DNA of 64,000 bases from Monocercomonoides exilis PA203 (lineage: Eukaryota > Protista > Preaxostyla). This document shows, piece by piece, positions 13,440 to 53,500 of this stretch (positions are counted from its first letter, which is position 1; each line of letters opens with the position of its first letter). A program made the translations under genes and the position numbers. Location: NCBI GenBank assembly GCA_001643675.2, contig LSRY02000003.1, forward strand, positions 806,001 to 870,000. Reading direction: 5' to 3'. Under the pieces are notes generated by a model. The model saw only the letters and a list, made by a program, of their open reading frames with translations, was not told the origin of the DNA and did no database searches.

Positions 13440-13643
13440 TCAAAATCTTGTAATTTTGGAAAATTATTTTTTAAACATCAAAATCACCTTTTGGATTTTT
13501 TTTACCAAATCCTCAAATCTTAAACATTGAAAGAAAATATTTTTTTATTTTAGGAATGGAAAAAATTTTTAAGAAAAAAAAATATTTTTTAAAATTCATT
13601 TATATAACAAAATGATAATGTGTCAAAAATTCAAATAATTTTA

Positions 13644-15313
13644 GTCGGGGAGTTAACCCGCTCAGGGTAGTAAACCCGCTCAGAAAAAGTGGAAAAAAAT
13701 GGGAATAAGATCACAAAGCTGAAGTTGAAGAAAAAAACTCAAGTTGCAAGATTGGCAGCATCCAGCGAAGCCAGGCTGTTGCATGATTCACACGAAAAGG
13801 GATTGTACATTCACCTTGTTTGCGGTCTTTCGAAATCTGCCATTGAAGAAGGGGGAGTGATTTCTCGACATTCGTTAAAAAGGGCTGAAAAAGCACAAAA
13901 CTGTGGAAGACCAAAAGGAAAACCTGGAAAGCTGTTAATTTTTTCGAAATCAGATGAACTGAGAATTGTTACAAAGATAGAGGTGGATGCAGAAAAGGGG
14001 ATTTATCATTCAAAGAAACAAATTGCAGAAATTGTGTGTTTGGAAAAGAATAATTTATGATCATTTAATTATTTATAATTCCCAGGCAAATGAAATAAGA
14101 ATGGAAAAGAGAAGCGATGGAGATGATATAATATGTGTTGATAAACACTGGCCAAATAGATTTTTATCGAGATATCCTGATCTAAAGCTGAAGCGTCCAA
14201 CACCTCTTCCAATTCATCGAGCTCTTCAAACATCAAAAGAAACAATTGCTCCATTCTTTGTCATGGTCACAAAATTTTTTGAAACGACCGAGGTCATTCC
14301 TCAGTTGTTTTTCAACTTGGATGAAACTTCTATGATTTTTTCTGAAAATCATTCATCAATTATTATCCCATCGACGTCCACAACTCCATCAATAATTCCT
14401 GAGCCATCTCTCCCAATGTTAACAAGCATAGTGTTTTTAACAAGCGCTGACGGGGTCAGGTATTTGGCTCCCATTATTATTCCATATTTAAATCTTCCTG
14501 AAGAATACAGAGAAGCCACGACTGAAACCGAGGTTTTTATCCCCAGCTCAAATGGTCATCTCTCTTCGAGCGGATTTGTAGAAGTTTTCCAAAAAGCTAT
14601 TTTGCCTAGGATGTTAAAAAAACGAACAGCGATCGGAAAAGCAGAGAAACATATCATTTAGATCATGGACGGAGGAACGGGCCATTTTTCACCAGAAGTT
14701 TTGAAGATATGCAAAGATAATTTAATTGATTTAATTCAACTTCCCTCACATACCACTCATCTTATTCAACCAAATGATCAGTACATTTTCGCGAATATGA
14801 AGAAAAATTTCAGCAAAGCAACGAATTGTGGAACATCAGCTTGTGCAAAAGATAGAAGAAAACTATTTGTTGAAGCTTTAAAGGATACATTTGCAATGGG
14901 AACTTTTCCGTCGACTATTCGAGCGAGTTGGAAAATCACAGGGTGGAATCCGTTCAACCCAGAGATTGTTTTGAGCATCATCACAGACAAACCCCCAGAA
15001 TGAAGCGAATCTATCAAAACATCTACCAAATGCATTGTAAATTCGAGATCTGGAAGAATTTTTTCTAGCTCTGATGATTTCTTCGAATTAACAAAATAAA
15101 ATAATGAACTGGATATTTAACACATTCGCATAGAAGTGTTCAGATTTTTACTCTGTTCCTATAGTATTTCATGATATTTTTTTGTAATAAGACTTTATTG
15201 ATTGCCTTTTTTGTTTTTTCTTTATTTTTTTTCACAAACAAATCAAAAAATGTTAAAAATATAAACTGATCAGGTGAGCAAGTTTACTCCCCTGAGCAGG
15301 TTAATTCCCCGAC
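13644..15313 (+). mobile_element. pogo/Fot1-like (DD35D) DNA transposon
   Basis: ~39-bp TIRs GTCGGGGAGTTAACCCGCTCAGGG... / ...CCCCTGAGCAGGTTAATTCCCCGAC, with TA on both sides. Confidence 0.92.
13689..15099 (+). pseudogene. pogo-family DDE_1 transposase with one intron (14034-14085) and two nonsense codons
   Basis: GRP and CENP-B-type HTH (HWPNRFLSRYPDL), FNLDET, MDGGTGH, PSHTTHLIQPND (DD35D). The GT-AG intron joins ...KKQIAEI|ANEIR... in frame. TAG at 14659 and TGA at 15001. Confidence 0.88.
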
Positions 15314-15314
15314 T

Positions 15315-17665
15315 AGAACTTGATTGATTTGATTGCATCAAGTGGCATTAGATCGGTCAACATACAATAAGATCGATCTAATGCCATTAAAATGCAGTCA
15401 AATTGGATGTGACTCAGTCACATCCGATCATTTCCATTCTGGGTTTCATGATCACTTTAAAAATATGTTTTTTGTGGGTCATTTCACTTGCTTGTTTCTC
15501 TTTTTTTCACAAAATGTCACAATCAACTTTTTTTTAGACATATTAGAGAGAGTGGAAAAGAGAAATACTATCACTGCACCAGTGCACATCGCTCCTTCAC
15601 CTGCAAAAAAAATCCCTCATCGAATCTGCTTGCAAATATATGAAAGTTGATAAAACTCATGCATTTTTCCGACTAACTGGATTTGCTCGCTTTGAATTTG
15701 ATTTGCTTTATCAGTTATTAAGCAAAGAAATCCCTCTTCATCGGGGAAAAGAAAAAACAATTGAAAAATTTGAGGATCAACTCTTTCTTCTTTTGAATTT
15801 TTTGCATCTTGGATTAACATCCTTCACTCATTTTCTCGTTTCCTCTTTTTATGGAACACAAAATTCAACAATTGAATTGCTTCATAGCATTGTTCAAAAT
15901 ATAAAAGTCAATCTGATCGATTTGTTTATCACATTTCGACCAGACAGATTAGATGATATGAGAGATGTGGGTGTTGTGGTTGACTGCACAGTTCTTCCAA
16001 TCAACAGACCAGCTGGAAGCTTGCAGTTTGGAACAAAATTCTACAGCGGGAAGCATCATATCTACTGCGTAAAGGCTGAAGTTGGTGTAAACCCGCGCAC
16101 CGGAACAGCCAGCACTGTCAGTTCCATTCACACCGGCTCAACACACGACTTTTCTATCTTCAAGGAGCATTTCCCACAATTTAAGGCGTAGCTTGGAGGG
16201 TCAAAAGTACTCGCAGACTCGGCATACATCGGGGCGAGGGCTGATTTGGATGCATATATTACGAAACCTGTTGGAACTCCTCAGCTAGCATCGCGGCGAG
16301 TCATAGTCGAGCGTTATTTAGGTCGTTTGAAGACTCTCTTCGCTGTCTTTCGCCACAATTGGCCATTTCAGGTCGAAAAGATTGCTGACTATTTCATTGT
16401 TACATGCGCATTGACAAACTTCCACATCCTTCACAACCCATTAACTGGACTTGACTGCGAAGCCAATCAGAGGTTCATCAATGAACTATACCTAATTACA
16501 ACAAGAAAAACAGAAGCAAGGAGACTTGTCAACGATAGATATCGGGCTAAACTTAAGGATAGACTCAACCCAGAGGCCTCTCCAACTTCTAGAATTACAG
16601 TTCTGCTTGCAGAAGAAGCTGGCGAGAATTTTTATTTCATACCCATATTATTCTTTATAACGTTTAATTTCTTCTTTTTCATATTTCAATAACCATAACT
16701 ATCTTTTTCAGGTGATTCTGATGACCAACAAACCCAAAATAGTGAAAAAGAAGAAAAAGAAGAAGAAAAAGAAGAAGAAAAAGAAGAAAAGGAAAAGAAA
16801 AAGAAAATTTCTATTGAAGAAAAAGAAAAAAGAAATGAATATATTATGTTGAATAGTGAAAATGATGAAATAGAAGATGAAAGAAATAATGTTGTTGGCA
16901 CATGGTTCATTCCGAACCAATGGAAAAGTCTTCGCCTTCTTCAACAATCTTCTTCTTCAACTTTTCCTTCTTCTTCATGTTCATCATTTGATGAAAAAAG
17001 AAAAAGAGTAAGTGAATCTCCTTCACAATCACTTCAAGCCAATAAAAAATGAGTTTTTTCATAATTTTTTTATATAAACATTCACCTTCATCACCTTTTT
17101 TGATAATCACAATACACTTTTGATGTTTTAGATAATATTTGTTTTTGTTGTTATTAAACATTCTAAAAAATATATGAAATTTTGATAAAAAATAGTTTTT
17201 AACTCTTTAAAGCTTAAAAAAAAATGAAAATATGAAATGAATGAAAATGAACATTAAAACAAACACGTATATGCAAATATTTAAAAATACATTCAAATAA
17301 GCTATTACTGTTGTTTTTTTTGTGAAAAATTTGGTAATCCTTACAAAAAATGCGTAAAAACTTGTTACAAATACATAGTATGAAAAACAGATAAAAGTGT
17401 AAAAACTAATCAAAAATGGCTTTTATAATATCTATTAAACACACATACCAAATATTGAAACACAACTAAAAACATTGGTGAAGAAATCAACAAAACAAAA
17501 AAAGTTAGGATCACAACACTCAAAACAAATTTAATTGATAATTCCGAAGCTGAAAACATGTGAGATTGATGAAATTCGATTAAAATTAGTTAAATTCGAT
17601 AAACCAGACATAAATCGATCTGACTGAGTCAAATTTTAGCGACTCAGTCAAATCAATCAAGTTCT
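15315..17665 (+). mobile_element. PHIS-supergroup (PIF/Harbinger-ISL2EU-like) DNA transposon, element 1
   Basis: TIRs AGAACTTGATTGATTTGA.../...TCAAATCAATCAAGTTCT. 3-bp TSD ACT at 15312-15314 and 17666-17668. Confidence 0.88.
15514..17052 (+). pseudogene. DDE_Tnp_4 (IS5/Harbinger-like) transposase, 2 exons, disrupted
   Basis: FFRLTGF HTH, VVDCT, FYSGKHH, GSTHD, LADSAYIG, RVIVERYLGRLK. Homopolymer frameshifts near the 5' end and TAG at 16189. A GC-AG intron at 16622-16711 restores frame into an exon ending ...WFIPNQWKS...ANKK*. Confidence 0.85.
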
Positions 17666-17671
17666 ACTATT

Positions 17672-20012
17672 AGAACTAAAACGAAATTATTTAGTAATGC
17701 GGTATTAGCTTCGACTAAGACCAAAAAGTGGTTCATAATACCAAAAAGATCGACTCAAAACCGATTTGATTAAGTCATGACCAATTTAACAAATTCTGGG
17801 TTTGTGATCTTTCTTCAGATATTTTCAAAAATATGGGTTTGATCAATTTTTTTGTTGTTGAAAAATTTTTTGATGTTACAATCTCCACTTTTGGATGTTT
17901 TGGAATGTGTTGAAAGAAGAAACGCAATACCTGAACATTTTGAATCAACGAAAAGAAAAGAAAACCTATCACTTATCGAATGTGCATACAAAGATGTGAA
18001 GGACCCATCTCGTGCATTCTTTCGACTCACGGGCTTTGTGCGATCAGAATTTGACATGTTACTAAGACTGCTTCCAGATGATTCACTTCCTCATCGGGGA
18101 AAGGCAAAAGCAATTAACACACTGGAAGAGCAATTATTTTTGCTTTTGAATGTTCTCCATCACGGCTCTTGCACCCTCACAAACATACTTGCATCAAAAA
18201 AACTTCACTCTCAAAGTGCGACTGTAAGACTGCTTCATTCCATTGTGTCTCGGCTTCGAGCGCCTTTGGCCGATCTTTTTCTGTCTTTCCGCAAAGACAG
18301 AATAGAGAGCATGAAGGATGTTGGAATAGTGCTTGATTGCACTGTGATTCCGACTAACCGACCAGGGGGTCGATTGGAATATGGAAAAAAGTTCTTTAGT
18401 GGAAAACACCATATTTACTGTGTCAAGGCAGAAGTGGGTGTTAACCCAAAGGTTGGCAGAGCAAGCACCATTAGCGCTATTTACTCAGGCTCCACGCATG
18501 ACTATGTTATATTCAAAGAGCATTATCCGTTGTTTGAATCGAAACTGGAGGGATCCAAAATTCAAGTTGATTCTGCATATATTGGTGCCAGACCAGACCT
18601 TGACGTTATCATAACAAAGCCCGTTGGCACACAGGAGCTTGCTTCCCATCGTGTAATAGTTGAAAGGTTCTTTGGAAGGATGAAAACACTCTTCTCCATC
18701 TTTCGCAAACCATGGATATTCGAAACTGATCGAATAGCTGACTATTTCAATGTGGCTTGCTGCCTAACTAATTTTCATATTCTTCATAATCCACTCACTG
18801 CGATTGACTCACAAGCAAATTCAAGATTTTTGGATGGAATGATAAGCGATTATCTTCGAAAACAGGAAGCAAAGAGCCTCGCAAATGAAAGATACCTTGC
18901 CAGATTAAGAAATAAACTTAATCCAAAAGATTCATTAACTCCCACAATTACGTCTTTAACTGCAGAATCAACAAGTTTTTTGAACACTTAAATACCCATA
19001 TTGCATTTATTTTCTGATTTATTGACTTTATTTTCCTTCTCGTTACCCACATTTAAGTTTTATTTTATTTTAGATAGCTCAGATGAGACATACGCAATGT
19101 CAAAAGCCAAAGAAAGAAGAGAAAATGAACAAGAGAAAGTAATGATCCAAAGAGAGCAGCAGACATCAGATTTGCTGAGTAGGGGAAGGGACGAGCACAA
19201 CATTCAGCCTCAAAATACTGATAATTCTTTGTCATGGTTTATCCCAAATCAATGGAAATCTGTAAGCACACTTTTTCCTCCTTCATCACAACAGTTTCCT
19301 TCAATTCCATCATCTTCCTCATCCGCTTCGTCATCTTCAACACAAAATTCAACCAGAAAACCTAATCAAACACAACTTCAGTTTTTACTGAATTGTCAAC
19401 ATTAGAACTGTTTTAATTATTATTTTTCCTCTATTGTTCAGACACCTCAAAAAATAATATAACAATGAACAGTTTTGAAAATTTTCATTTTTTTCTTGTT
19501 AAAAATAAAAAAACAATAAATTTCGTCATTGAAAAAACTCTTGTTTTGTTGTTTTCATAAAAAAGCTTAACAAACAATATTGAAATGTAAATTTATTTGT
19601 GAAAAACAAAAAAATCGCAATTAACAATAAATGGAAAGCTTCAGAGTTATATGGGGAAAACATATTCACTCCGTTTTTAAATTATAAAACTCTCACATCA
19701 TAAAAAAACGAAAACATTAGAGATAAAAATGTCACAGAATCAGAGTGAAAGATGATAATCTAACACTTCATAAATGTGTCGCTAACATATTATAATTACT
19801 GATTCCAGCGTTTCAAAACTTTGATCGTTGTATTTCATAAGAAATAATAAAGATATGAAAAATTATGATCAGATAAAAAACATATAAAGAATTTTCTAAA
19901 GATCAAAAAAAATAGACATTAAACCGTTTTGATTGAGTCGAAACGGAAATAATTGATTAAATACGAATTTGCAATAACAATACGAATTGACCAGATAAAT
20001 TCAGAAAAGTTC
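17672..20012 (+). mobile_element. PHIS-supergroup DNA transposon, element 2 (sister family)
   Basis: Left end AGAACTAAAACGAAATTAT. Right end ATAAATTCAGAAAAGTTC is an imperfect TIR lacking the terminal T. ATT on both sides (17669-17671, 20013-20015). Confidence 0.8.
17873..19405 (+). CDS. Intact DDE_Tnp_4 transposase, join(17873..18974,19074..19405), ~477 aa
   Basis: FFRLTGF, VLDCT, FFSGKHH, GSTHD, QVDSAYIG, HRVIVERFFGRMK. Phase-1 GT-AG intron at 18975-19073, the same position as in element 1. Exon 2 contains WFIPNQWKS. Confidence 0.88.
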
Positions 20013-20015
20013 ATT

Positions 20016-20984
20016 AGAACTTGATTGATTTGACTGCGTCAAGTGGCATTAGATCGGTCAACATCCAATAAGATCGATCTAATGCCATTGAGACGCAGTC
20101 AAATTGGATGTGACTCAGTCACATCCGATCATTTCCATTCTGGGTGTCATGATCAAAATATTTTTGTAAAAAAATTATAATTTAAATCAATAAATTGCGT
20201 TATATTTAATATCATTTTGATTGAATTTTAGAATTTTTCATTCTTAATAGTTTTTTATTCTTTAAGTTTTTTAAAATTATTGCAATTATTCTGAAAAACC
20301 TGGAAATTCTAATTATTTTTATTTGAGAATAATTACTGGTGATAAATTATAATGTTACAAGAAATTTTCATTTCATTTTTCAATATTTAGAACTTGTTTC
20401 ATTTGTTTTTAACATATCTCAATAATTTTCAGAAAAATGAAAAAACACAAAAAAGAATTAATGAAATCACATTTTCTTTTTGTTTTTTATTCGATATGCA
20501 AAAATATCGAAAAACGATTGAGTTTGAAACACACAACATTGAAGAAAATAAAAAATGAGAAATTTATATAATTATGTTGAAAATTTTCAAAAAAAATGAA
20601 TATGAAAATGTAAAAAATGTATTATATTTACAGTTTCATCTCGATTTGAGTTGAAAAAGTTCGTTGCAGAGTCGCAATGATAAATAAATCAAGTTTTCAA
20701 ATTGCTGAATTAAACAAAGAAAACAACATAAAATCAAACGAATATCAAAAAAATGTATTTTATACAATAATATATTGAAAATTCAACGTTAATGAACTTG
20801 AAATAATAAAAATATTAACAAAACAAAAAAATGCTTGATCACATGTTGTGATCATAAAAATCACAATTTCGCCCTTGGCGAGATTGAGGGAAATTCGATA
20901 AAAATTAGCAAAATTCGATAGACAAGATAAAAATCGATTTGACTGAGTCAAATTTTCGCGACTCGGTCAAATCAATCAAGTTCT
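20016..20984 (+). mobile_element. Non-autonomous derivative of the PHIS element 1 family (element 3)
   Basis: The first ~140 bp are nearly identical to 15315-15453. The 3' end matches ~17600-17665. TSD ATT at 20013-20015 and 20985-20987. AT-rich non-coding interior. Confidence 0.88.
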
Positions 20985-20993
20985 ATTTCATTA

Positions 20994-21077
20994 GCAAGGA
21001 TGGCCGAGTGGTCCAAGGCGGTGGATTTAAGCTCCCCTATCCGTATGGATGCGTGGGTTCGAACCCCACTCCTTGCA
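20994..21077 (+). tRNA. tRNA-Leu (anticodon TAA)
   Basis: Acceptor stem GCAAGGA/TCCTTGC plus discriminator A. A-box TGGCCGAGTGG. Anticodon loop TTTAAGC (TAA at 21028-21030). Long variable arm. T arm GTGGG-TTCGAAC-CCCAC. One T:C mismatch in the anticodon stem. Confidence 0.93.
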
Positions 21078-21084
21078 TTTTTTT
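21078..21084 (+). terminator. RNA polymerase III oligo(T) terminator
   Basis: T7 directly after the tRNA discriminator base. Confidence 0.8.
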
Positions 21085-21227
21085 CACCTATAACAAAATT
21101 TTTTTTGAAGTATTTAAAGAATTATTTTTTTTTTTTTTTGAATAATCAATTCAAAGCTGTTTGTATTGTCTTTTTCTAAACCTCTGCGTCACCCCTGAAA
21201 ACAAAATATATCGTCAGTCACTTCGTC

Positions 21228-21268
<41 letters not shown>

Positions 21269-22835
21269 GTTATAAAATTGATTGATTGAGTGGCATTATG
21301 ACATAAAAATGATTCGTGTTATTATTCTCAAAATATTCAAAGAAATTATCTCTTGCATGACACATATAAAATATATCAAATATCATCGTTTGACTTTCGA
21401 AAGAATAACACAATAAATAATGTCAAATTTCGAAAGAGATTTATTGAAATGATTATTTCATCAAATATAGATTCATGCAATATGTGTATATTTCCCGGAT
21501 TCCAAATAGAACAATAACTGCTTTTGGAAGATTCACTTTGTTGAAAAGCATGGCGAAATCGTTCGTTATCCCCAAAAAGATTTATTGCAATCAACACAAG
21601 TTATGGGATTGGAATTCTTCATAACTATCCATTTACAAACACGTCATCGTTCAGTAACGACATTTTGAATCGTCATTTTCTTCTTTCAAGCCAGTTCCTG
21701 CAAACTGCATAACAGAATAATTGCCTTTTTGTTCTGCTTTAATTTTAAAGGATATTTGAGAGAATATGTGGAAGAAGAGTTTAAATCAACAACACTGAGA
21801 TTGTTTGAGAATTGGAGAAGAAGAAAAGAGAAGAGGAGGAAGAAGAGGAGGAAGAAGGGAAAGAAAGTGAAAAGCTATCTTAAACATACACCTGAGCAGC
21901 CTGAGCATCAACTAAGCTCTGAAAATATTTCTCCGAACCGATGAGCGGAGATACTTCGAGAAGAAATGAAGAGCAACTTGATCAATGGAAAGCTAGAGAG
22001 CTGGTGGGGGAGAATAAGCTGCAACAAAAGAAAGAGGTCGGATGGTATATTTGAACGAATTTTTTGAGGAAAGTTGAAATGGTTCAGTTCAATGCTCTGC
22101 TGGACAAGTTTTGTGTGATTGTTGATCGGACTGTGATGTGGAAGCAGCTGAAGAGTATAGCAAAAGAAGAGAACGCACAGAGAATCTCAGCAAAGAAAAA
22201 CTCCGACGCAAAAGAGACACCGATGAAGCTGAAGGCTTTACTGCGCGAGCTGGATAGTTCTTTGGCAATTGAATTGGAGCAGATTCTGTCACTTGAGCGG
22301 AAGAACAGGAGAGCAAGGACGTCCAGTGAAGGCGCGCGTTCTGTCAGCAGCAGTTAGGTGAATCTGTTGCACACTCAGTTATGGTGATAAGACAGGGAAG
22401 GAAAATTGTTGCAAATGTTGTGTAGCTGTTAAGGGGAATCGAGAGAAGGGGGATCAACAGAGAAAGAGAAAAAGTTTGGCGGAGAGTGAGAGGGAGAGTC
22501 TGAAGGAGAGTTTTTATGTGGAAGATGGAAGAAGATATACAAATGGCTAATGCAAAATCATGAATCGGCCACAGCAGCAACAGCTAAAGCGGTAATGGCA
22601 GCGCTCACGGAAGAAGTTGATGAATTTGAGTGGTTTGCGACGATGGGATGGAGGAGAAAGATGAAAAGGAGAACGAGGAACAAACTGAGGATATGGAGGA
22701 GCATGCGAGGGGCATGTGGAGAGGGATGCAATGTGGATGTTACGATGGTGGAAGAGAGCCAATGCAAGGGACGATTGTTGGTTACTCACTGATCATTGCA
22801 AATATCAGTGAGTAATCTGAGTTTGTATTTCGGCC

Positions 22836-43537: not shown

Positions 43538-44538
43538 ACAGAAAGAAAGATTTTTGATTGAGAGAGATTTCTGAACAAATTTCTTTTTTTGTTGTGATCA
43601 CTTTCATTTTTTTTTTTTTTTTATTTTTTCATTATGGAATCTTCATTTCTTTTTTTATTCATATTCGAAAACTGATCGTATTTCATTTCAAATAAAGCAA
43701 GTTCTCAAACACCTTTTTAAATTAGCTCAGCCTAATTTATGTATATTTTCCCTGATATTTGTGCTTGTTGTGTATCTCAATTTCTTCATTTATTTTCCAA
43801 TTTGCCAACTTTCTCCTTCGTTTATCTTCCTTTTTTCAATACAACCGAAGCAATTCACCTGAATGAAATTATCATTCACTTCATAATCTCTTATTGTGAT
43901 GAGGGCAAAATCAGACTTTGATAAAAAAAAGATTCAATCAAAGCCACCTTTGATCAGATCCATTGTTAAAAAAAGAAAATTTAATATCATTTTTTTATAT
44001 TCACTTTGTGAAAAAACAGTATTTTTTTTTCATGTTTAAAGAAAGAATTCAAAACTTAATTTCCGTTTGAGTTCGGAAAGTTTCAATAAATTCTGATCTT
44101 ATCAAGATGGAATGATTTCTTTATTTTCTTTTGTTTCATTTTTTCTTTTATTTGATCTATGCAAAATTACGAAAAATCCTTATTTTGAACTGTTCAAAAT
44201 AAAAAGCAACGCAGAAATGATTCATCAACAGTTTATAATTTAACGATTATCATTCATTCAAAATAAATGAGTTATTTGATTTGTATGAGAAATAATTTTA
44301 TTATAAAAAGAATAATTTGGCTTCGGTTGATGTTACAATAAGTTTTTCTGTATTAATACACAATCGATATGACTTTTTTTTCATAATTCACATTATCCTT
44401 CTCATTCGCCGAACAAAATTGATGTTTTTTTTTGAATCAAAACATTTTTTTTTGAAAGATCAAAATAATATGGGGCGCAGGAATTTTTTATTTCTCCATT
44501 TTTCCACATCTTCAATAATTGCGATCCACTTCCCCAAC

Positions 44539-47500
44539 ATGAGAGCTGCATTCAATATTTTAGCATTCTTGTTGCTAGTTTCTAACTGCTATTATGGAGA
44601 AGGCATTGCAGAAAGGCAATTTCAACAAAAATGGAACGAGGAGATGCAGGAAGGCAAGATCAGCATTGAAAATGGAAAAAGAGATAACAAAAATTATTTT
44701 GGCAATTCATTGAAGAAAGTAATAAAATCAGCTGACAATCACATTTGCAGTGTTCAAACGAGTCTAAATATCTTCAATTCATCATTGTGTGTGGCCCATC
44801 TCAACATCATCCCTCTCACTGGTTGTCCACTCCTCACGGTCCAACACCACTCATCTGCCACCATCTGCTCCTCCACTTGCCAAGTCAACCAAGCAGCAAA
44901 ATCTCCACTTTTCATCTCTGCCCATGCCTCCCTCGCCCTCACAAACTTCTCCCTCACCACCCACCAACCTGCCATCCTCTCCTTCCCCCTCTTCTCCACC
45001 CCAAACAATCTCCTCCCACATGCCCACTCCCCAATCCCTGCCTCCTTCTCCATCTCCCACTCCTCATTCTCCTCTTTCGTCTCCCTCATCCAGCCCTTCC
45101 TTTTTTCTCCTGCTTCCCTCTCTTCCCCTTCCCCTTCTCCATCTCCATCCCTTTCCCCTTCTCCTTCATCTTTCTCATCCTCATCCTCATCCTCTTCTTT
45201 TTCTTCCCCTTCCCCTTCTTCTTCTATTTCCTCTTTCTCTTCTCCTTCCCCTCTCCATGTCCATCACCAATCCCATCCCCACCTCCAAATCCACCTCAGT
45301 CTCCATCTCTCAAACACCCTCTTCTCCAACATCTCCTCTCCCCAATCCCCTCGATCTCTTCCATCCCTTCCCTCCCACTCACTCAATTCATTCACCTCAA
45401 CCACTTCCACTTCTACCAACACCAACACCAACGCCAATTCAACCCCCTCCTTCTCCCTTCACTCATCTCTTTCCATCCACTCAACCATCTTCCTCCACAC
45501 CCACAACCCCATCGATGGTGCCATCCTCCCCGACCTCAACAGCCCATCCACCTCTCTCTCTGCCTTCAATGCCTCTTTCCTCCACCAAACTCGTTCTTCA
45601 TCAAATGCTGCTGAGGTGCATGTTGGAACAGAATCTCAAAGAGTGAAACCTGGAAGACTTACTTCATTCGATCAAAACAGTCATCGCTTTGAATGGTGTG
45701 AATGGAACGATTCAAATGGTGGATCTTCTGCAGGAGGTGCACTTTGTGTTTCTTGTACAAATGCAAATCTCACAATCACTTCCTGCTCATTTAACAATTG
45801 CTACTGCACAGGAAATGGTCATAGCGGAGCGTTATATTGTGAATTGTTGTTAAATGTGAACATCGCAAAATCCAATTTCACAAGCTGTTCAGCTGCTCAT
45901 GGAGGAGCAGTTCACGCAAGGAATCCACAATCAAATTCTGTTTGGACGTTCTCAGATAACAGAGTCGAAAGTTGTAAAATAACAGATTGGTGCGGAACTG
46001 GTTGGTACTTTTCCCTCTATAGCATGCCCTCAGATGCTCAATTCCTGTTTTCCAAATGCAAGTGCATTGCAAATTCTGGAAAAGATTCTGCTGGTTCTCT
46101 GACATTTTCATATCCTCCAAGCAATAAGCCAAGTCAATTTATTGTAAATGATTGCCAGTTTATAAACAACAAATTGACTGCCTCTGCCAATTATGGAGGC
46201 GCTGCCATTTACTGTTATGCAACATATAACTGGATGAGCGGAAATAAATTCATCACATTCTGTTTCTTCGATGGAAATACAGCAACTAATGGAAGAGGAA
46301 ATGATGTGTTCTTCAGTGGCAATGCCATTACTCAATCTCCATTCGAGAATTGTGGTTCAACAACCCCAACAAAAAGAGTGTGGAACAATGGACAAGCAGA
46401 TAGCGATGTGTACAATGGCTGGCTTCCAATCATCAATCAGAACAAAATCGTTTCTAACAGCGGAACTGATGCTGATGCCTGTGGCAGACCCCAACAGACC
46501 CCATGCGCCACCATCGAGTATGCCCTCAACGGATTCATTTCCCTCCTCCAAGATGCCTCTCTCACCCTCCTCACCTCAATTTTTGTTCCCATTCAAACAC
46601 TAACCTTCAGCGCGGTTGACACCATAATCACTGGAAATGGCACAACTGCCACCACCATCGCCTCCAGTGGCATTCCCCAGCCATCAAACTCAAATTTACA
46701 ATCAACATCTTCTTCTTCTTCTTCATTTTCATCTGCATCTTCTTCACCAAATCCATCTGCCTCGTCTGCCCTCTTCCAACAGACCCAGGGCTCCCTCACA
46801 GTCTCTGCCCTCGCCATCGCCCACAACTCCACAAACCAAATCACCCCCATCCTCTTCCACCTCTCCGGTAACTCCCCTTCCCTCAACCTCAACACAACCA
46901 CCATCACCGGAACAACCTCCATAACAATAAAAACTCCCCTCTTCTTCCTCACTGCTGGCTCCCTCGCCCTCAACCACACAGCAATCACCCAACTCGCCCT
47001 CAACAGCCAAAGCATCTTCCACCTCACCTCCCTCACAAATCCCCTCACCCTCAACTCCTCCAACATCACCCACATCACCTCCACAGCCACCCCCACCAGC
47101 TGTGTCCTCTCCTCTGCCACCTCCCCTGCCCTCTCCCTCTCCCTCGCCAACTGCACCATCACCAACATCAACTCAGAACAGTTGAGCCAACAAACTGCCA
47201 CCAATGGCGGGTGCATCTCATTCGCCTCATCTGCCCCTGCCAATTCGTTTTCAGTGAGTGACACAGCCTTCTCCACCTGCTCTGTGAGCGAGGATACAAG
47301 TTCTGGAGGAAGAGGCGGCGCTCTCATGATCGAGTACAACCATGGCTCACAAGTGACATCCACAACCATTTCCATCACCGATATCGTGTTTTCAGCCAAC
47401 AAGGCCTGTGTCGGAAGAGATATGTATTTTGTGTGCGAATCATTTGTCGCTTCTGTGAAAGAGCCCTTGTTCGCCTTCATGGGAAACATCACTCAGAAAG

Positions 47501-50500
47501 ACAACTCGATTGCTGGACATGATAGAACAGAGGCATTTGGCGATTGGGACGTTGATTTGTTCATATTTTTTGACGGTTTCTTTGATGATACAATATATGT
47601 TGATGGAACATCTGGAGTGGAGAGGGCATATTGTGGACTGGAGAAGGCGCCATGTTACAACGTAAACTACGGAATCGGGCATTTGAAGAGAACACAGAAC
47701 ACAAAACAGGAGATTATTGTTATTTCAAATACGTTGATGGCGGGGTTTGTGGATGTGGGTGGAATATGCATGAAGGCAAAAACTGAGACAATTGTGGAGA
47801 TAGAATGCCAAAGAGAAGCGAGTGGATCTGACGAATGTATTCTGAAATCAGAATCACTGACAGAAATACAGTTCATTGGGATTGTTGTTCCATCGAGTTT
47901 CAGCAGAACAATCTCAGCAGTGATTGAATCGAGCACTCAAAATGGGGAGTTGCACATGAAGAACTGTAAGACGAGTGTTATTGGAGGGAAGCAAAACACG
48001 ATTGGATTTATCTTGATCAAATCGACAGGGAAGATGGTTGAACTCAACTCAGTCACGATATCAGATGTGAAATCAACAGTCTCGCTATTTTCATTTTCAC
48101 TTTCATCAGCTAATGTGAATGAACATGAATACAAAGTGAAACTGTTTAATTGCACATTGAAAGAATTGGAGATTGATGGAGGTGAAGAGGCAGCCGTGAT
48201 TGGAGGGAATGTGGAAGTTGGGATGATGATAAATGGAAGCAGATTTGACGGGGCATTGTCGGAGAAGAGTGAAGAAGGAGGAGCACTGAAAATAGCGTTG
48301 AGTGCAGAAGGATATATTACAATTCAAGAGAGTTCATTTACTGAATGTATTTGTGAGAATATGAGTGAGGGAGGAAAAGGAGGAGGGATATATCTGGATT
48401 GCAGTTCAAATGAAGAAGGATTTCAGCTTTCATCGATATCGTTTTCGGGGTGCTCAGCAACGATAGGGAAGAATATGTTTGTGAAGAGTGGGAATCTGGT
48501 GAACAGTGTGAATACGGAGCGTTTTGCATTTGATTGCTCAGGATATTCTAATGATGGAAATGCATTTGTTGGAGAAGATGAGATTTACGGGGAATTGGAT
48601 CTGCGAGTGTTTCTTGTTTCTTTGAAGTGGATGGTCGTGTCTGTATCGACTGGTGGACATGACACATTGGGATGTGGAAGTGAAAAATTCCCATGTGAAT
48701 CTATGAAAAGTGGAATTGACCACATTGACAGAAGTGGGACAGAAGGAGAAAGGAAAGTGAAAGTGAGGGATGAAGGGACAATTGAAGATATATTTTCTTT
48801 CACAGATGCACTTGTGATTGATGGATGTGCGAATGAGGGAGATGAAACCGAACACAGGCCTATTCATTTTGAAGGGACAATCAAAGGGGATTCTGCAACA
48901 ACTATTATTTCATCAACTGCCTCACTCAGCTTGTTATCTTTAAAATTGCAGATTCGAAGTCAATTTGTACCAAGCATGAATTCACTGATCTCATCGAGTG
49001 GAGTCCTTCAACTTGTAAACTGTTTATTTGAGATTCAATCATCAACAGATATTGTTCAATATTCATTGATATCCACAACCACTGGAAGTTGCACACTGAA
49101 AGGATGCAGTTTGGCGGATTATTCATTTGTCATATCTCCATTTGTGATGGCTTCTTCTGTTTTGTTTGAAAACAGCAACTTTTCAAATATTGCAAATACT
49201 GGAAGTGGAGAAGGAGGTGTTGCAAGAGTGACATTAAAAAATGATGAAAAACTGGAAATCAAATCAACAAATGCATCATCTTGTTCACTTTCATCAAGAA
49301 ATGGAAAAGGAGGATTCTTGTATTTGGATTGTCAAAATTGTTTGGATGAAAAGCCATTTCTCTTTGATGTTGGTGTCACTTTTGAAAATAACAATGCAGC
49401 CACAGGGAAGAATGTGTTCATTTTGGGAAAGGATTTTAATGCTTCTGTGACAAATGAGTCATTTGCCTTCGATTATTCATCAATGATAAATGATGACAAT
49501 TTGTTTGTTGGAAGTGATAACAATCAAGAAAAGGATTTGTTCATGTTTTTGATACCATTCAGCTCATTTGAGATATTTATCTCATCAGAAGGATTTGATG
49601 TTGCACGTTGTGGAAGTGAAGAAGAGCCATGCTTCACAATGTGGAAAGGGATGAAAAATGTGAAAGAAGGAAATGAAAAGAAAACAATTCAAATATCAGG
49701 ATCAACAATTATTCAAGATTCATTCAACATGTCCAATTATCAGATCAAAAAGAGTGTAAAGATGGGAGAAGAAGATACAAAAGCAATGTTGAATTTTGAA
49801 AAGGCAATTGGAAGTCAACTGGAATATATCATGGTGAATGATGTTCATCTTGAATTGGCAAATATCAAACTGCAACTGTCATCTGGGTTTGGCAACTCAG
49901 CCAAAACGATTATTTCAAACAAAGATGGAGATCTGGTGATAAGTGAATGTTCCTTCTATTCAGAAGCAGGAGTGAACAATGGATTTGATTGTGTGTTTGT
50001 GGATGCGATTGAGGGAAGTGTGGAAGTGAACGATTTGTCAATTGAATCATGCAATGTTGGAAACAGTATATTTGGCATTCATGATGCTGGAGTTTCTTGC
50101 CATTTGATGAATGTTCGAGTGGAATTGTTGAATGAAAGTGGAGGTTGCATTTTATCGATCAAGAAATCTGAACAAGGATTGAAGATAAATGAAGGAGTAA
50201 ATGAAGATGGTGCAACTATTGAGATTGGCAATTCATCATTTTCGGGAGTGAAGAGAATTGGAAATGGAGCAAGCATTTTGGAATCAAAGTGTGAGAATAA
50301 GATTTGTTTGGTTGTGAAGGAGAGCAACATTACAGAAGACAAATCAGAAAAAAGTGAAAAAGGAGGTGCAATATACTTCACATTGGGATCGTCTGGTTCA
50401 ATGAAGATGATTGACTCAACAATCACTAATTGCAATTGCAGTATTAGTGAAGGGAAAGGAGGAGGGGTGTATCTGGCAACAGATGAAAGAGGAGAATTGA

Positions 50501-53500
50501 ATTTTTCATTTGTGGGTATGAAATTCAGTGCAAACACAGCAAAAGTGGGGAATGATATTTTCATTGAATGCTTCAACATCACATCGCAGATCGATGAAAC
50601 CCAATTTCAATTTGATCTTCGAGAAGGGAAATACAATCGCAGTAATGCAATATTTGGAAGAGATGAGTGTGATAACAAAGATGATACAGACCTGATTGGA
50701 TTTGTGACGATCCATCAGAGTGACACGATCATTGTGAGCAGTGTGAATGGAACGAATGAGAGACAATGCGGAACAAACATACTTCCTTGTTATTCAATTA
50801 ATCATGGGCTGGTGCATCTGACATCTGAATATGTGAGTCTATTGTATGTTGACGCTGAGAGTGTAATTGAAGAAGAGATAAATCTGGAGGAAATGAGTTT
50901 GAGCTCGAAAAGCAGAGGTTTGTGTGAAGTTGAAGTGAAAACAGGAATTGAAAAGACAAGAGAGACTTTGATAACAACAACAGGAACTGTGTCATTGTTG
51001 AGAGTGAATTTTGTATTTGATTCAATTTTCATCTCTTCACATGAATCACTGATATTGCCAGAAGGAGGAATTCTTGAAATTATGAATTGTTCATTCACCT
51101 CAAAACAATCAGCAGAAGAAGGAAATGAATATGCAAGCATTCCATTTCGTATTTTTAATATGGAAAAAGGAGAATTGCAACTTGATGGATGCACAATATC
51201 AAATCTTATTCTTCATGAATCTGCATTATTTCTCTCATCACCACTTTCATCAGTAATCGATTCATTAACGATTTGCCATTCGACAATTTCAAAATCTCTG
51301 GTAGATATTAATGAGTGCGGGCAATTGAAAATTGATAGACTGCTTGCTGAAAATATCACAGTTGATGGAAATGAAGAATCATTGATATATTGCCTGTCAA
51401 TGAAAAAGACAATTCAATTGGCAAATTGCACAATGGGTGAAGTCAGTTCAAAGACCACAAAAGGAAAATTGATGAAAGTGGAGAATTGCACAGATGTGAT
51501 AATGGACAGCTGCATTTTCGATGGGAGTTCAAAGGAAAGAAACGAGAAGAGTTTGAATGCAGAAGAAGAGATGTGCAGATGGGATGGATCTCTTGTGGAT
51601 GCTGTGAAGAGTTCTGTGATGATGAAAGATACAACAATAGCAAATTCACCAGATGGTGGAATAACAATGAGTGGAGGGGAAATGGTTGTCAAAGAAGGAA
51701 GATTTGAGAACAATGATCCCTCAATTGAAGGATATCCATCATTGAGAAGAAATATCATCTGTTCAGATTCAGGAACATCGAAAGCGGTGAGTTTGAAAGG
51801 AGGAGATGGATTGGAGAGAAACGCATCACTTTGAATGTTGAATGATGGGTGCTCTTTTGAAGGAATTGTTTCTGAGAGAGATTCATCACTTTTCATTCCT
51901 GTGTTGGAGAGTGTGGAAGCAAAAGAAGAGACAGATAGAATGAAGCTGACATTCAAAGGAATGCTTCTTGTTCCATGCAATCTGTCATTCTCAGTTGTGA
52001 AGAGGAAGGGAGAAGAGAAAGAGATTGAACATTATGATTTTGATTCAAATGGGTTTTTGTCAGAAAGAAAAGTTGAAGGAAGTGTGGCAAAAGATCTGAT
52101 CAATGGTTGTGGAAATGAAATAGAAATGAGTGTGCACATTTTGTTTGGGAATGCTGAATCTCCTTCATCAACAAATTCATTCATTCTGAAAAATGCAACT
52201 GAATCCGATGGAGACGGAAACATTGTGAAAGGAGACAACAGTTCAAGTTCATTGTGGATAATAATAACACTAACAATTATTCTTTTCGTTGTTCTTATTG
52301 TTGTCGTTGTTCTCGCTATTCGATGGAGGAAAGTGAAGGAAAGAAATGAGGAGTTGCAAGAGATTGTGAATGACAACATCAGAAAGGATCCGAAGGCATT
52401 TGAGATGGTGACGATGGAGATGTCGCCTGAGGAGCAGTGGAGAAGAGCAGAGAGGGAGGCAGAGAAGAAGAATGAGGAGAGGACAAAGAAGAGAGAATAT
52501 GAGAAAAGTTTGAAACACTCGGAGTCTTCAGAACATTTATTGAGTGAGAGTGGATCAACTGAATACATTTTTGGAAAAGATTCTGATAAAAATGGAGAAT
52601 GGGATTTGGAGAAGGAAGAAGAAACACGAAAGCGAACTTCATCACCATCCATCTCATCAGCAGATACAGAAACCGCATTTGTTCGAGGGGAGGATTTGTT
52701 TCCCACAACTTCATCGATGTCGAATCTGGTGGATGCAATGGCATGTTCATCGCCTTATGAAAAGTTGATTGTGGATCTGAGAGATTCGTTGTTCATGTTG
52801 CTTCATGGGAGGAATGAGAAGAAAGATCTGGCGATTGGCACTCTGAAGGAGAGGGAGATGACAGGAGTGCAGATGCTGTTCTGGGTGGCGAATGGAGCTT
52901 TGCACTCGCTTGAAGATGAGGAAGACGAACTTCCCTCTTTGCGAGAGCTGAGTCCGCACATTGTGCTGTTCTCGGAGCACATGGTGATCTGCATTGCGCT
53001 CCACTCCGACTGCTCCTCGTCATCTGATGATTCGGATTCATCCTCAATCTCATCAACCACCATTGTGACATCTGCAAGTGAGGAGGATGATGATGATGAT
53101 GAAAGAGATTCTCTGCCCTCATCAGCGTTTGAGGATGATGAAGACAAGTGGAAGGAGTGTTTGAGGTGGAAGGCGCCAGAGCTGGTGATGAACAGGAAGA
53201 TGGGAGCAACGGAGAAGTCAGTGGCATTCTCCATCGGGATGATGCTGTGGGAGTGTGTGACACTCGAGATCCCGTTTGGAGAATACGAAGGGGAAGTGGC
53301 AGGGCAAAAGATTGCTGATGGAGAGAAGCCGGATGAGAGGGGGATTGAAGAGAGTGGATTGAAGAATATGGTGAATGCGTGTCTGTCAGCAGAGCCATCG
53401 AAAAGACCGACACTCACTGAAGTGAAGAAAGAGCTGGTTGGGCTGTTTCCTTCTGGGACATTTGTTGTGACGATGACAGATGCAATCATTCTTGAGGAAA

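Follow-up and report, generated by a model that had tools for sequence, protein, structure and literature searches.

Three families of DNA transposons inserted just upstream of tRNA genes in the protist Monocercomonoides exilis

We analyzed a stretch of 64,000 nucleotides (nt) from the mitochondrion-less protist Monocercomonoides exilis PA203 (GenBank assembly GCA_001643675.2, contig LSRY02000003.1, positions 806,001 to 870,000 of the forward strand), in which four DNA transposons stand one behind the other in front of a tRNA-Leu(TAA) gene. The whole stretch is called the window, and its positions are counted from its first letter; positions relative to a tRNA gene are counted from the mature 5' end (+1). 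An earlier note on the window had proposed that cut-and-paste transposons of the Harbinger type are targeted to a fixed position upstream of tRNA genes. We followed this proposal through the M. exilis assembly (82,301,135 bp in 101 contigs), and we are nearly certain that targeting to tRNA starts operates genome-wide.

Four stacked transposons in front of tRNA-Leu(TAA)

The locus contains the following features:

13642-13643 and 15314-15315: matching TA dinucleotides, the target-site duplication (TSD) of the pogo element
13644-15313, + strand: pogo/Tc5-like transposon, decayed, with in-frame stops (DDE_1, E=2e-7)
about 13644-13682 and about 15275-15313: terminal inverted repeats (TIRs) of the pogo element, 44 nt, 86% matched (inverted-repeat detection)
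15312-15314 and 17666-17668: ACT, the TSD of element 1
15315-17665, + strand: Harbinger element 1, autonomous type, broken by stops, with a TIR pair
17669-17671 and 20013-20015: ATT, the TSD of element 2
17672-20012, + strand: Harbinger element 2, transposase apparently intact
20013-20015 and 20985-20987: ATT, the TSD of element 3
20016-20984, + strand: element 3, 969 bp, non-autonomous
20985-20993, + strand: nine nt (ATTTCATTA) between element 3 and the tRNA gene, left over from the original -9 to -1
20994-21077, + strand: tRNA-Leu(TAA), intact (ARAGORN; Rfam RF00005, 51.5 bits)
21078-21084, + strand: T-run, terminator of the tRNA gene

The coordinates and order of the elements, as first described, all held when repeat, open reading frame (ORF), Pfam, ARAGORN and Rfam evidence was assembled. 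The DDE_Tnp_4 domain of element 1 was found in two ORF pieces (Pfam, E=2e-8 and 2e-6). Element 1 is younger than the pogo element because its left ACT takes in the final two bases of pogo. The first exon of element 2 is an open frame at 17873-18988 encoding 372 amino acids (aa), which matched the full DDE_Tnp_4 profile (1-158, E=4e-21). A near-copy of element 2 on C1, 98.5% identical across the first 1,497 nt and 96% identical across the last 860, directly adjoins tRNA-Thr(AGT); this near-identity is consistent with recent mobility. Element 3 is a derivative of element 1, its ends being 95% and 90% identical to those of element 1 (direct and inverted repeats), and a pogo copy on C61 was 96% identical to the pogo element of the window. 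No further copies of the four elements were found elsewhere in the 64-kb window.

Stepwise deletion of the elements, each together with one copy of its duplication, yielded ...caaaaattcaaataattt-TA-tttcatta-GCAAGG, which looks like an ordinary tRNA upstream region. In this rebuilt site, the pogo TA maps to -10/-9, the ACT of element 1 to -12 to -10 and the ATT of elements 2 and 3 to -9 to -7, reproducing the empty site and the target positions that had been reported. Public short-read contigs (four runs of one sample, probably the source sample) spanned the junction between element 3 and the tRNA gene (20897-21036) with zero base differences and the junction between pogo and element 1 (15200-15421) with zero base differences and one gap. 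On the other side of the tRNA gene, two long T-runs of approximately 17 and 60 nt lie at 21122-21268, 45-190 nt 3' of the gene. The 22 nt at 21275-21296 are 77% like the Harbinger 5' end, with no element body after them.

Insertions upstream of tRNA genes across the genome

Exons 1 and 2 of the transposase, the second of which is putative, were searched separately. The search with the element 2 transposase found at least 110 copies in the genome (255 candidates) at 48-100% identity, many of them stop-free; NCBI labels its relatives in M. exilis 'putative DDE superfamily endonuclease'. Neighboring Harbinger copies less than 6 kb apart lay on the same strand in a ratio of 28:3, for example, with ten minus-strand copies over C62:192-236 kb and six copies over C22:115-133 kb. 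We picked 12 stacks or singletons without knowledge of tRNA genes and fetched 3.2 kb past the 3'-most transposase. A tRNA was present in 10 of the 12 flanks, every time in the orientation of the transposase. Eight of these tRNAs lay exactly at the element end, and two lay behind one more element, i.e., a non-autonomous Harbinger element at L091 and a pogo element at L098. The tRNAs were Pro-AGG, Thr-AGT, Ser-AGA, Val-AAC, Asn-GTT, Leu-AAG, Gly-TCC, Leu-CAA, Ala-TGC and one that contains an intron. By chance, a tRNA in a given orientation would be found in approximately 0.3% of random 3.2-kb pieces, taking 150-200 tRNA genes in 82 Mb; a genome paper that is silent on transposons gives 153 predicted tRNA genes (PMC6759080). 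The association is far above chance.

Element 3 had at least 45 matches in the genome. Among 30 fetched loci of this type, six tRNAs were found, all past the 3' end and in the same orientation, with four of them at 7-9 nt; in nearly all the other fetched copies, 3-6 nt were followed by the 5' end of a further element, belonging either to another subfamily of Harbinger or to the third family described below. We obtained 17 independent junctions between Harbinger elements and tRNA genes, covering more than 12 anticodons. The 3' end of the element faced the tRNA in 17/17, and the gap between the element end and +1 ranged from 5 to 12 nt, most often 9; therefore, the 3-bp target lies between -12 and -3. 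The TSDs were mostly ACT, AAT or ATT (pattern A-N-T), matching triplets surrounded most copies, and the TIRs of 18-26 nt started with AGAACTTGATTG. At L011, a single Harbinger insertion stood directly beside a tRNA gene, and its far side bordered natural DNA. No further ORF of at least 60 aa, Myb/SANT-like or other, was found in element 2 outside the two transposase exons, and exon 2 had no Pfam match. Membership in PIF/Harbinger stands despite the missing second ORF, as some members do not have one.

The association was also assessed from the tRNA side. Of 3,339 Rfam candidates, 63 were scored with the tRNA model and ranked by score alone, and for 60 of them we took the 120 nt upstream. At fifteen of these 60 blind-picked tRNA genes, a transposon ended 5-12 nt before +1 (11/55 when non-redundant). 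The ends were the 3' end of elements 1 and 3 at five genes, other Harbinger subfamilies at three, pogo with its TA at four and the third family at three. Taking both sides together, elements ended 5-12 nt before +1 at 26 distinct tRNA genes; segmental duplicates with identical flanks (L050/51, L057/58, L043/44, L086/87 and L004-6) were counted once, and the association by coordinates alone is a lower bound. The tRNA genes adjoining insertions scored 51-71 bits, like intact genes, and the insertions were all upstream of +1. The blind counts (15/60 from the tRNA side, 10/12 from the Harbinger side) bear out position-specific targeting upstream of tRNA genes. The upstream slot of the earlier note stood, whereas its limits of -12 to -7 proved too narrow, the range being approximately -12 to -3 genome-wide.

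Three tRNA-like sequences, at L004:2483-2562 (also in L005 and L006), L014:1410-1494 (- strand) and L115:231-320, received no call from ARAGORN or Rfam and were not counted. They lie 6-8 nt after transposon ends and contain a B-box-like GGTTCGA and a T-run terminator; their folding was no better than that of shuffles. These sequences may be tRNA genes in decay, or they may represent an unknown type of gene transcribed by RNA polymerase III (Pol III).

The pogo family was examined in the same manner. Of its hits, 17/30 lay within 5 kb of a scored Harbinger transposase, and we picked four loci (C47, C15, C41 and C61) blind, without a known Harbinger neighbor. The C47 copy was a clean single insertion with its TA at -8/-7 of tRNA-Pro(TGG) and natural upstream sequence on the far side. 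Similarly, the C15 copy was a clean single insertion at -7/-6 of tRNA-Val(CAC), with a natural far side including the A-run. The C41 locus held a pair next to a tRNA-like sequence that was not recognized as a tRNA, and the C61 copy lay within a stack. Beyond C47 and C15, five more pogo ends were adjacent to tRNA genes, and the TA targets ranged from -10/-9 to -6/-5. The orientation of pogo to the tRNA was mixed, with approximately three copies in the same and four in the opposite orientation. That is, the orientation shared with the tRNA in the window extends to Harbinger elements genome-wide (17/17) but not to pogo. Intact pogo copies matched DDE_1 (E=6e-13, 4e-11 and 3e-8) and gave borderline scores for HTH_Tnp_Tc5 (20.4 and 21.1 bits, slightly below the cut-off of 22.2).

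Both families initially seen at the slot were thus borne out, and a third, unclassified family was also found there. Its ends are flanked by TA and read TA followed by G[CT]GTGT[CA]AA.A.CCGGG with a tandem subterminal repeat; read towards the tRNA, the end is ..CCCGGGTATTTGACACGC followed by TA. It was located 6-8 nt upstream of two tRNA species, with TA targets at -10/-9 and -8/-7, and also within stacks. A Pfam domain and a second end were both looked for within 2.5 kb without success. The sites were as follows:

L043/L044 (C21:1279470, C26:8111): third family
L056/L103 (C7:831898-): third family
L003:2470-2520: third family
L120:250-295: third family

Stacked elements often shared one triplet, e.g., ..GTTCT-ACT-AGAAC.., and such single shared triplets are predicted by repeated use of the same gene-proximal target. 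Rebuilding the stacks gave plausible original distances of 10 nt at L091, where one ACT is common to two elements, and 7 nt at L098. Stacks very probably arise by successive gene-proximal insertion: a new insertion would land between the tRNA gene and the previous element, and the older elements would be pushed upstream into head-to-tail stacks spaced only by 3-bp (A-N-T) or TA duplications.

It could be supposed instead that tRNA genes are not recognized at all and that the elements home to each other's ends, or that tRNAs travel and duplicate as passengers. Most copies indeed abut another element at 3-6 nt, the junction of the pogo end (..CCCCGACT) with the Harbinger 5' end (AGAAC) recurs at six loci, and some units of tRNA plus stack are duplicated with identical flanks (the four pairs named above). 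However, the single insertions beside tRNA genes (pogo at C47 and C15, Harbinger at L011) have a natural far side and TSDs that exclude the tRNA, and the 26 occupied tRNA genes differ, with many anticodons and varied leader sequences. That ACT recurs at the pogo end has a simple reason: once pogo has inserted, its AC and the T of the TA form the sole A-N-T triplet that the slot offers. Pure end-targeting and carry-along of tRNAs are refuted, and we regard an origin without any recognition of tRNA genes as extremely improbable. The placement is neither random nor a mere following of other transposon ends, the two outcomes that the earlier note had named as refuting its proposal.

Elsewhere in the window, an open frame of 2,505 aa occupies 44317-51834 (+ strand). 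The part at 44784-45108 is 85% identical to L103:581-906 on another contig, 0.6 kb upstream of a tRNA gene, which suggests that the frame is a member of a repeated coding family.

Recognition of the slot

We compared the upstream regions of 44 non-redundant tRNA genes free of transposons. The pattern consisted of an A-run at -21 to -16 (66-84% A), a T/C-rich stretch at -14 to -7 and CAA at -3 to -1. Insertions fall between the A-run and the gene, and the A-run is thereby displaced by kilobases; the harmless safe haven that the earlier note saw in this position is putative. Many Harbinger 3' ends read GAAAAxxTCT and would supply a replacement A-run at approximately -19 to -14, and this new run may stand in for the promoter.

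Such ends could also mean that the target is read directly from DNA. The Harbinger transposase would recognize a TIR-like motif (an A-run with TTCT-like pyrimidines), which occurs approximately 10-21 nt upstream of tRNA genes and at the 3' ends of resident elements, and would insert just downstream of it with no Pol III protein involved. The A-run and T/C-rich stretch of transposon-free tRNA genes and the typical GAAAAxxTCT ends agree with this explanation, which would also account for why the orientation is strict and why stacked elements re-use exactly one 3-nt target. However, the first-insertion sites at L011, L014, L004, L003 and L019, whose far-side flanks are natural, showed no consistent TIR-like sequence by the target. 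The end of elements 1 and 3 (..CAATCAAGTTCT) has no A-run, yet it is the commonest end beside tRNAs. In addition, a non-targeted Harbinger subfamily has very similar ends (..GAAAAAGGTCT), yet it is not found at tRNAs, and pogo and the third family occupy the slot with unrelated ends. Direct reading of DNA is therefore unlikely in our judgment.

The non-targeted subfamily differs in the C-terminal tail of the transposase. In the window, the tail is represented by two features:

16903-16929, + strand: tail motif WFIPNQWKS of element 1, in putative exon 2
19235-19261, + strand: tail motif WFIPNQWKS of element 2, in putative exon 2 (open frame approximately 19067-19405)

The putative exon 2 encodes a charged, Ser-rich, low-complexity tail, and that of element 2 contains a C-terminal LQFLL near the stop at 19403-19405. 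Two motifs, W-x-[IL]-P-x-Q-W-K-S and a C-terminal [ST]-P-L-Q-x-L-L, were kept in every tRNA-associated subfamily examined (10/10 tRNA-associated copies); they survive amid low-complexity sequence at 48-100% protein identity. The variant subfamily reads SWHLPMQWDS, carries a long poly-Ser extension and has no PLQxLL. Its copies on C11, C25 and C2 end normally, and two perfect duplications, AAT/AAT, were seen among them. No tRNA was found at either end of these copies (0/3); the surroundings are AT-rich non-tRNA DNA. Overall, 10/10 copies that have the motif lay at tRNAs, as against 0/4 copies that lack it. The variant keeps A-N-T but not tRNAs; therefore, the A-N-T preference goes with the catalytic core and the homing to tRNAs with the tail. 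Targeting by Harbinger elements, as the earlier note had claimed, has an exception in the one subfamily with an altered tail.

The tail comparison also bears on a second alternative, in which a melted, TFIIIB-bent and nucleosome-free start site attracts DDE transposases generally and selection acts against insertions elsewhere, with no tethers. The presence of three unrelated families in one window from -12 to -3 is in accordance with it, as is the absence of an orientation preference in pogo. However, a closely related Harbinger subfamily shares the catalytic domain and the A-N-T duplications and nevertheless passes over tRNA genes, and the Harbinger orientation in 17/17 requires asymmetric recognition. 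In addition, 46% of the genome is repeats and offers many tolerant sites (PMC8767320), and selection alone cannot yield precision on the scale of single nucleotides. We consider site structure very unlikely to be the whole cause.

We propose, for the most part from the above comparisons, that three cut-and-paste families integrate 3-12 nt ahead of the mature tRNA 5' end, in a slot of approximately 10 bp: a large single-gene PIF/Harbinger family with its non-autonomous derivatives, the pogo/Tc5-like family and the unclassified TA-flanked family. By analogy with other eukaryotes, Pol III would be expected to start at this slot. The identity of the tRNA is irrelevant to targeting. Harbinger integrates one way only, with its 3' end towards the tRNA; its catalytic core would supply the local A-N-T preference, and the disordered tail with its two motifs would tether the transposition complex, on tRNA genes, to an asymmetric part (TFIIIB, TFIIIC or Pol III) of the Pol III pre-initiation complex. 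The pogo family would reach the same slot by its own means and without control of orientation. This explanation as a whole, i.e., three transposon families at the tRNA-start slot, stacking and a tail tether, is probable. The chances are about even that a tail-mediated protein tether, as the motif pattern suggests, is what guides Harbinger. We suggest more tentatively that the tail motifs may form a short portable module that docks the transposition complex on the Pol III pre-initiation complex and so guides oriented integration at the start of tRNA transcription, and that the homing of pogo and of the third family may have evolved independently. The tail of pogo has a conserved ending of its own (..PPEWA..G-x-[FY]-G-x-[IV]-Y-x-[AS]-S-D..LF), and no peptide motif common to the pogo and Harbinger tails was found.

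Several observations weigh against the tether explanation or limit its reach. The relation between motif and targeting is a correlation that comes from a single divergent lineage, whose three copies are not independent, and it is no proof. The pogo and third families hit the same slot without the Harbinger motifs, and a property of the site itself, such as melted or bent DNA, may contribute. Many of the GAAAAxxTCT ends resemble the natural A-run plus pyrimidine tract, leaving room for DNA recognition, and the TSDs around some stacked copies are mismatched. The list of tRNA genes is incomplete (63 scored candidates only), and the public read evidence consists of short contigs from one sample, in which empty-site alleles did not appear. 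Finally, the 5S and U6 genes, which Pol III also transcribes, showed no transposon ends upstream, whether in the 5S arrays, at five dispersed 5S genes or at the one U6 gene, although approximately six independent loci are too few to judge. Both kinds of gene carry a TATAAAAGG box approximately 30 nt upstream in place of the tRNA-type A-run.

The 5S genes also form two inverted arrays, C15:1360580-1391038 (+ strand) and 1409441-1435538 (- strand), with units of approximately 1.3-1.45 kb and purine/pyrimidine-skewed, low-complexity spacers. TBP is present in the genome as two paralogues, both interrupted by an intron (C16:255227-255916, - strand; C27:727746-728472, + strand), and one of them could be dedicated to Pol III.

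Significance and comparison with known systems

To our knowledge, targeting of tRNA flanks, the textbook case of a safe site, has been worked out only for the retrotransposons of yeast and Dictyostelium, and Dada are the only DNA transposons known to specialize on small RNA genes. The earlier note had regarded the targeting as undescribed for the group. This stands within the full-text literature searched, which included two genome papers and left most subscription journals outside: no earlier account was found in which Harbinger or pogo elements target the regions upstream of tRNA genes. The paper on the PA203 Nanopore assembly assigns 4.5% to DNA transposons and 35% to unclassified repeats, and tRNA is not mentioned in it (PMC8767320). 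The present results indicate that DDE cut-and-paste transposons can evolve a tRNA-flank strategy with Ty3-like precision, three times in one protist, and that tRNA-targeted stacking accounts for a share of the repeat islands of M. exilis. Targeted and non-targeted Harbinger subfamilies that differ in a short tail offer a natural comparison, which makes the targeting determinant directly testable. The displacement of the upstream A-run by kilobases raises the question of how tRNA genes remain active afterwards. If the tail module is true, DNA transposons would have in it their first targeting system that works through a protein tether and is precise to the start site. Such a module would be a natural model for steering DNA integration to safe places in a genome and of interest for the engineering of site-directed integration.

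The Ty3 element of Saccharomyces cerevisiae integrates within a few nt of the Pol III start of any tRNA gene, with the initiation complex as its landmark. It is the closest match to the M. exilis elements in precision and position. However, Ty3 is a retrotransposon whose integrase acts on cDNA, whereas the M. exilis elements are cut-and-paste transposons with DDE_Tnp_4 or DDE_1. They are also distinguished from Ty3 by 3-bp or TA duplications, the strict orientation of Harbinger and long head-to-tail stacks, and the role of TFIIIB is putative here.

Canonical PIF/Harbinger elements usually have a T-W-A TSD and a second, Myb-like gene. The M. exilis elements resemble them in DDE_Tnp_4, short TIRs, a 3-bp TSD and abundant non-autonomous derivatives; unlike them, they have an A-N-T TSD, no second ORF in the 2.3-kb element and a tail exon with two motifs. 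We know of no PIF/Harbinger elements with tRNA-start targeting and fixed orientation. The pogo family resembles the pogo/Tc5 branch of Tc1/mariner in DDE_1, the TA duplication and TIRs, and perhaps in a Tc5-type helix-turn-helix, for which the score was borderline. Known pogo elements use TA sites broadly, whereas the M. exilis pogo uses TA at -10 to -5 of tRNA genes, and most of its copies lie in stacks upstream of tRNA genes.

The targeting of Pol III-transcribed genes by retrotransposons has been reviewed (PMC5911963). In Dictyostelium, several unrelated families converge on tRNA flanks, a case of convergent evolution (PMC6101501); TRE5-A uses a window approximately 50 bp upstream (PMC9012585), and Ty1 uses a 1-kb window upstream (PMC3545840). 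TRE5-A, DGLT-A and Ty1 are like the M. exilis set in that unrelated families converge on tRNA flanks. However, they are retrotransposons that insert tens to hundreds of bp away, whereas in M. exilis DNA transposons insert 3-12 nt from +1, and three families use the same slot. Dada are DNA transposons specialized on multicopy small RNA genes including tRNA (PMC3706591, PMC8869645). Their insertions fall within the RNA gene itself, at a fixed sequence, and they have a transposase superfamily of their own. Unlike Dada, the M. exilis elements belong to Harbinger and pogo, insert upstream independently of the tRNA sequence and leave the gene intact.

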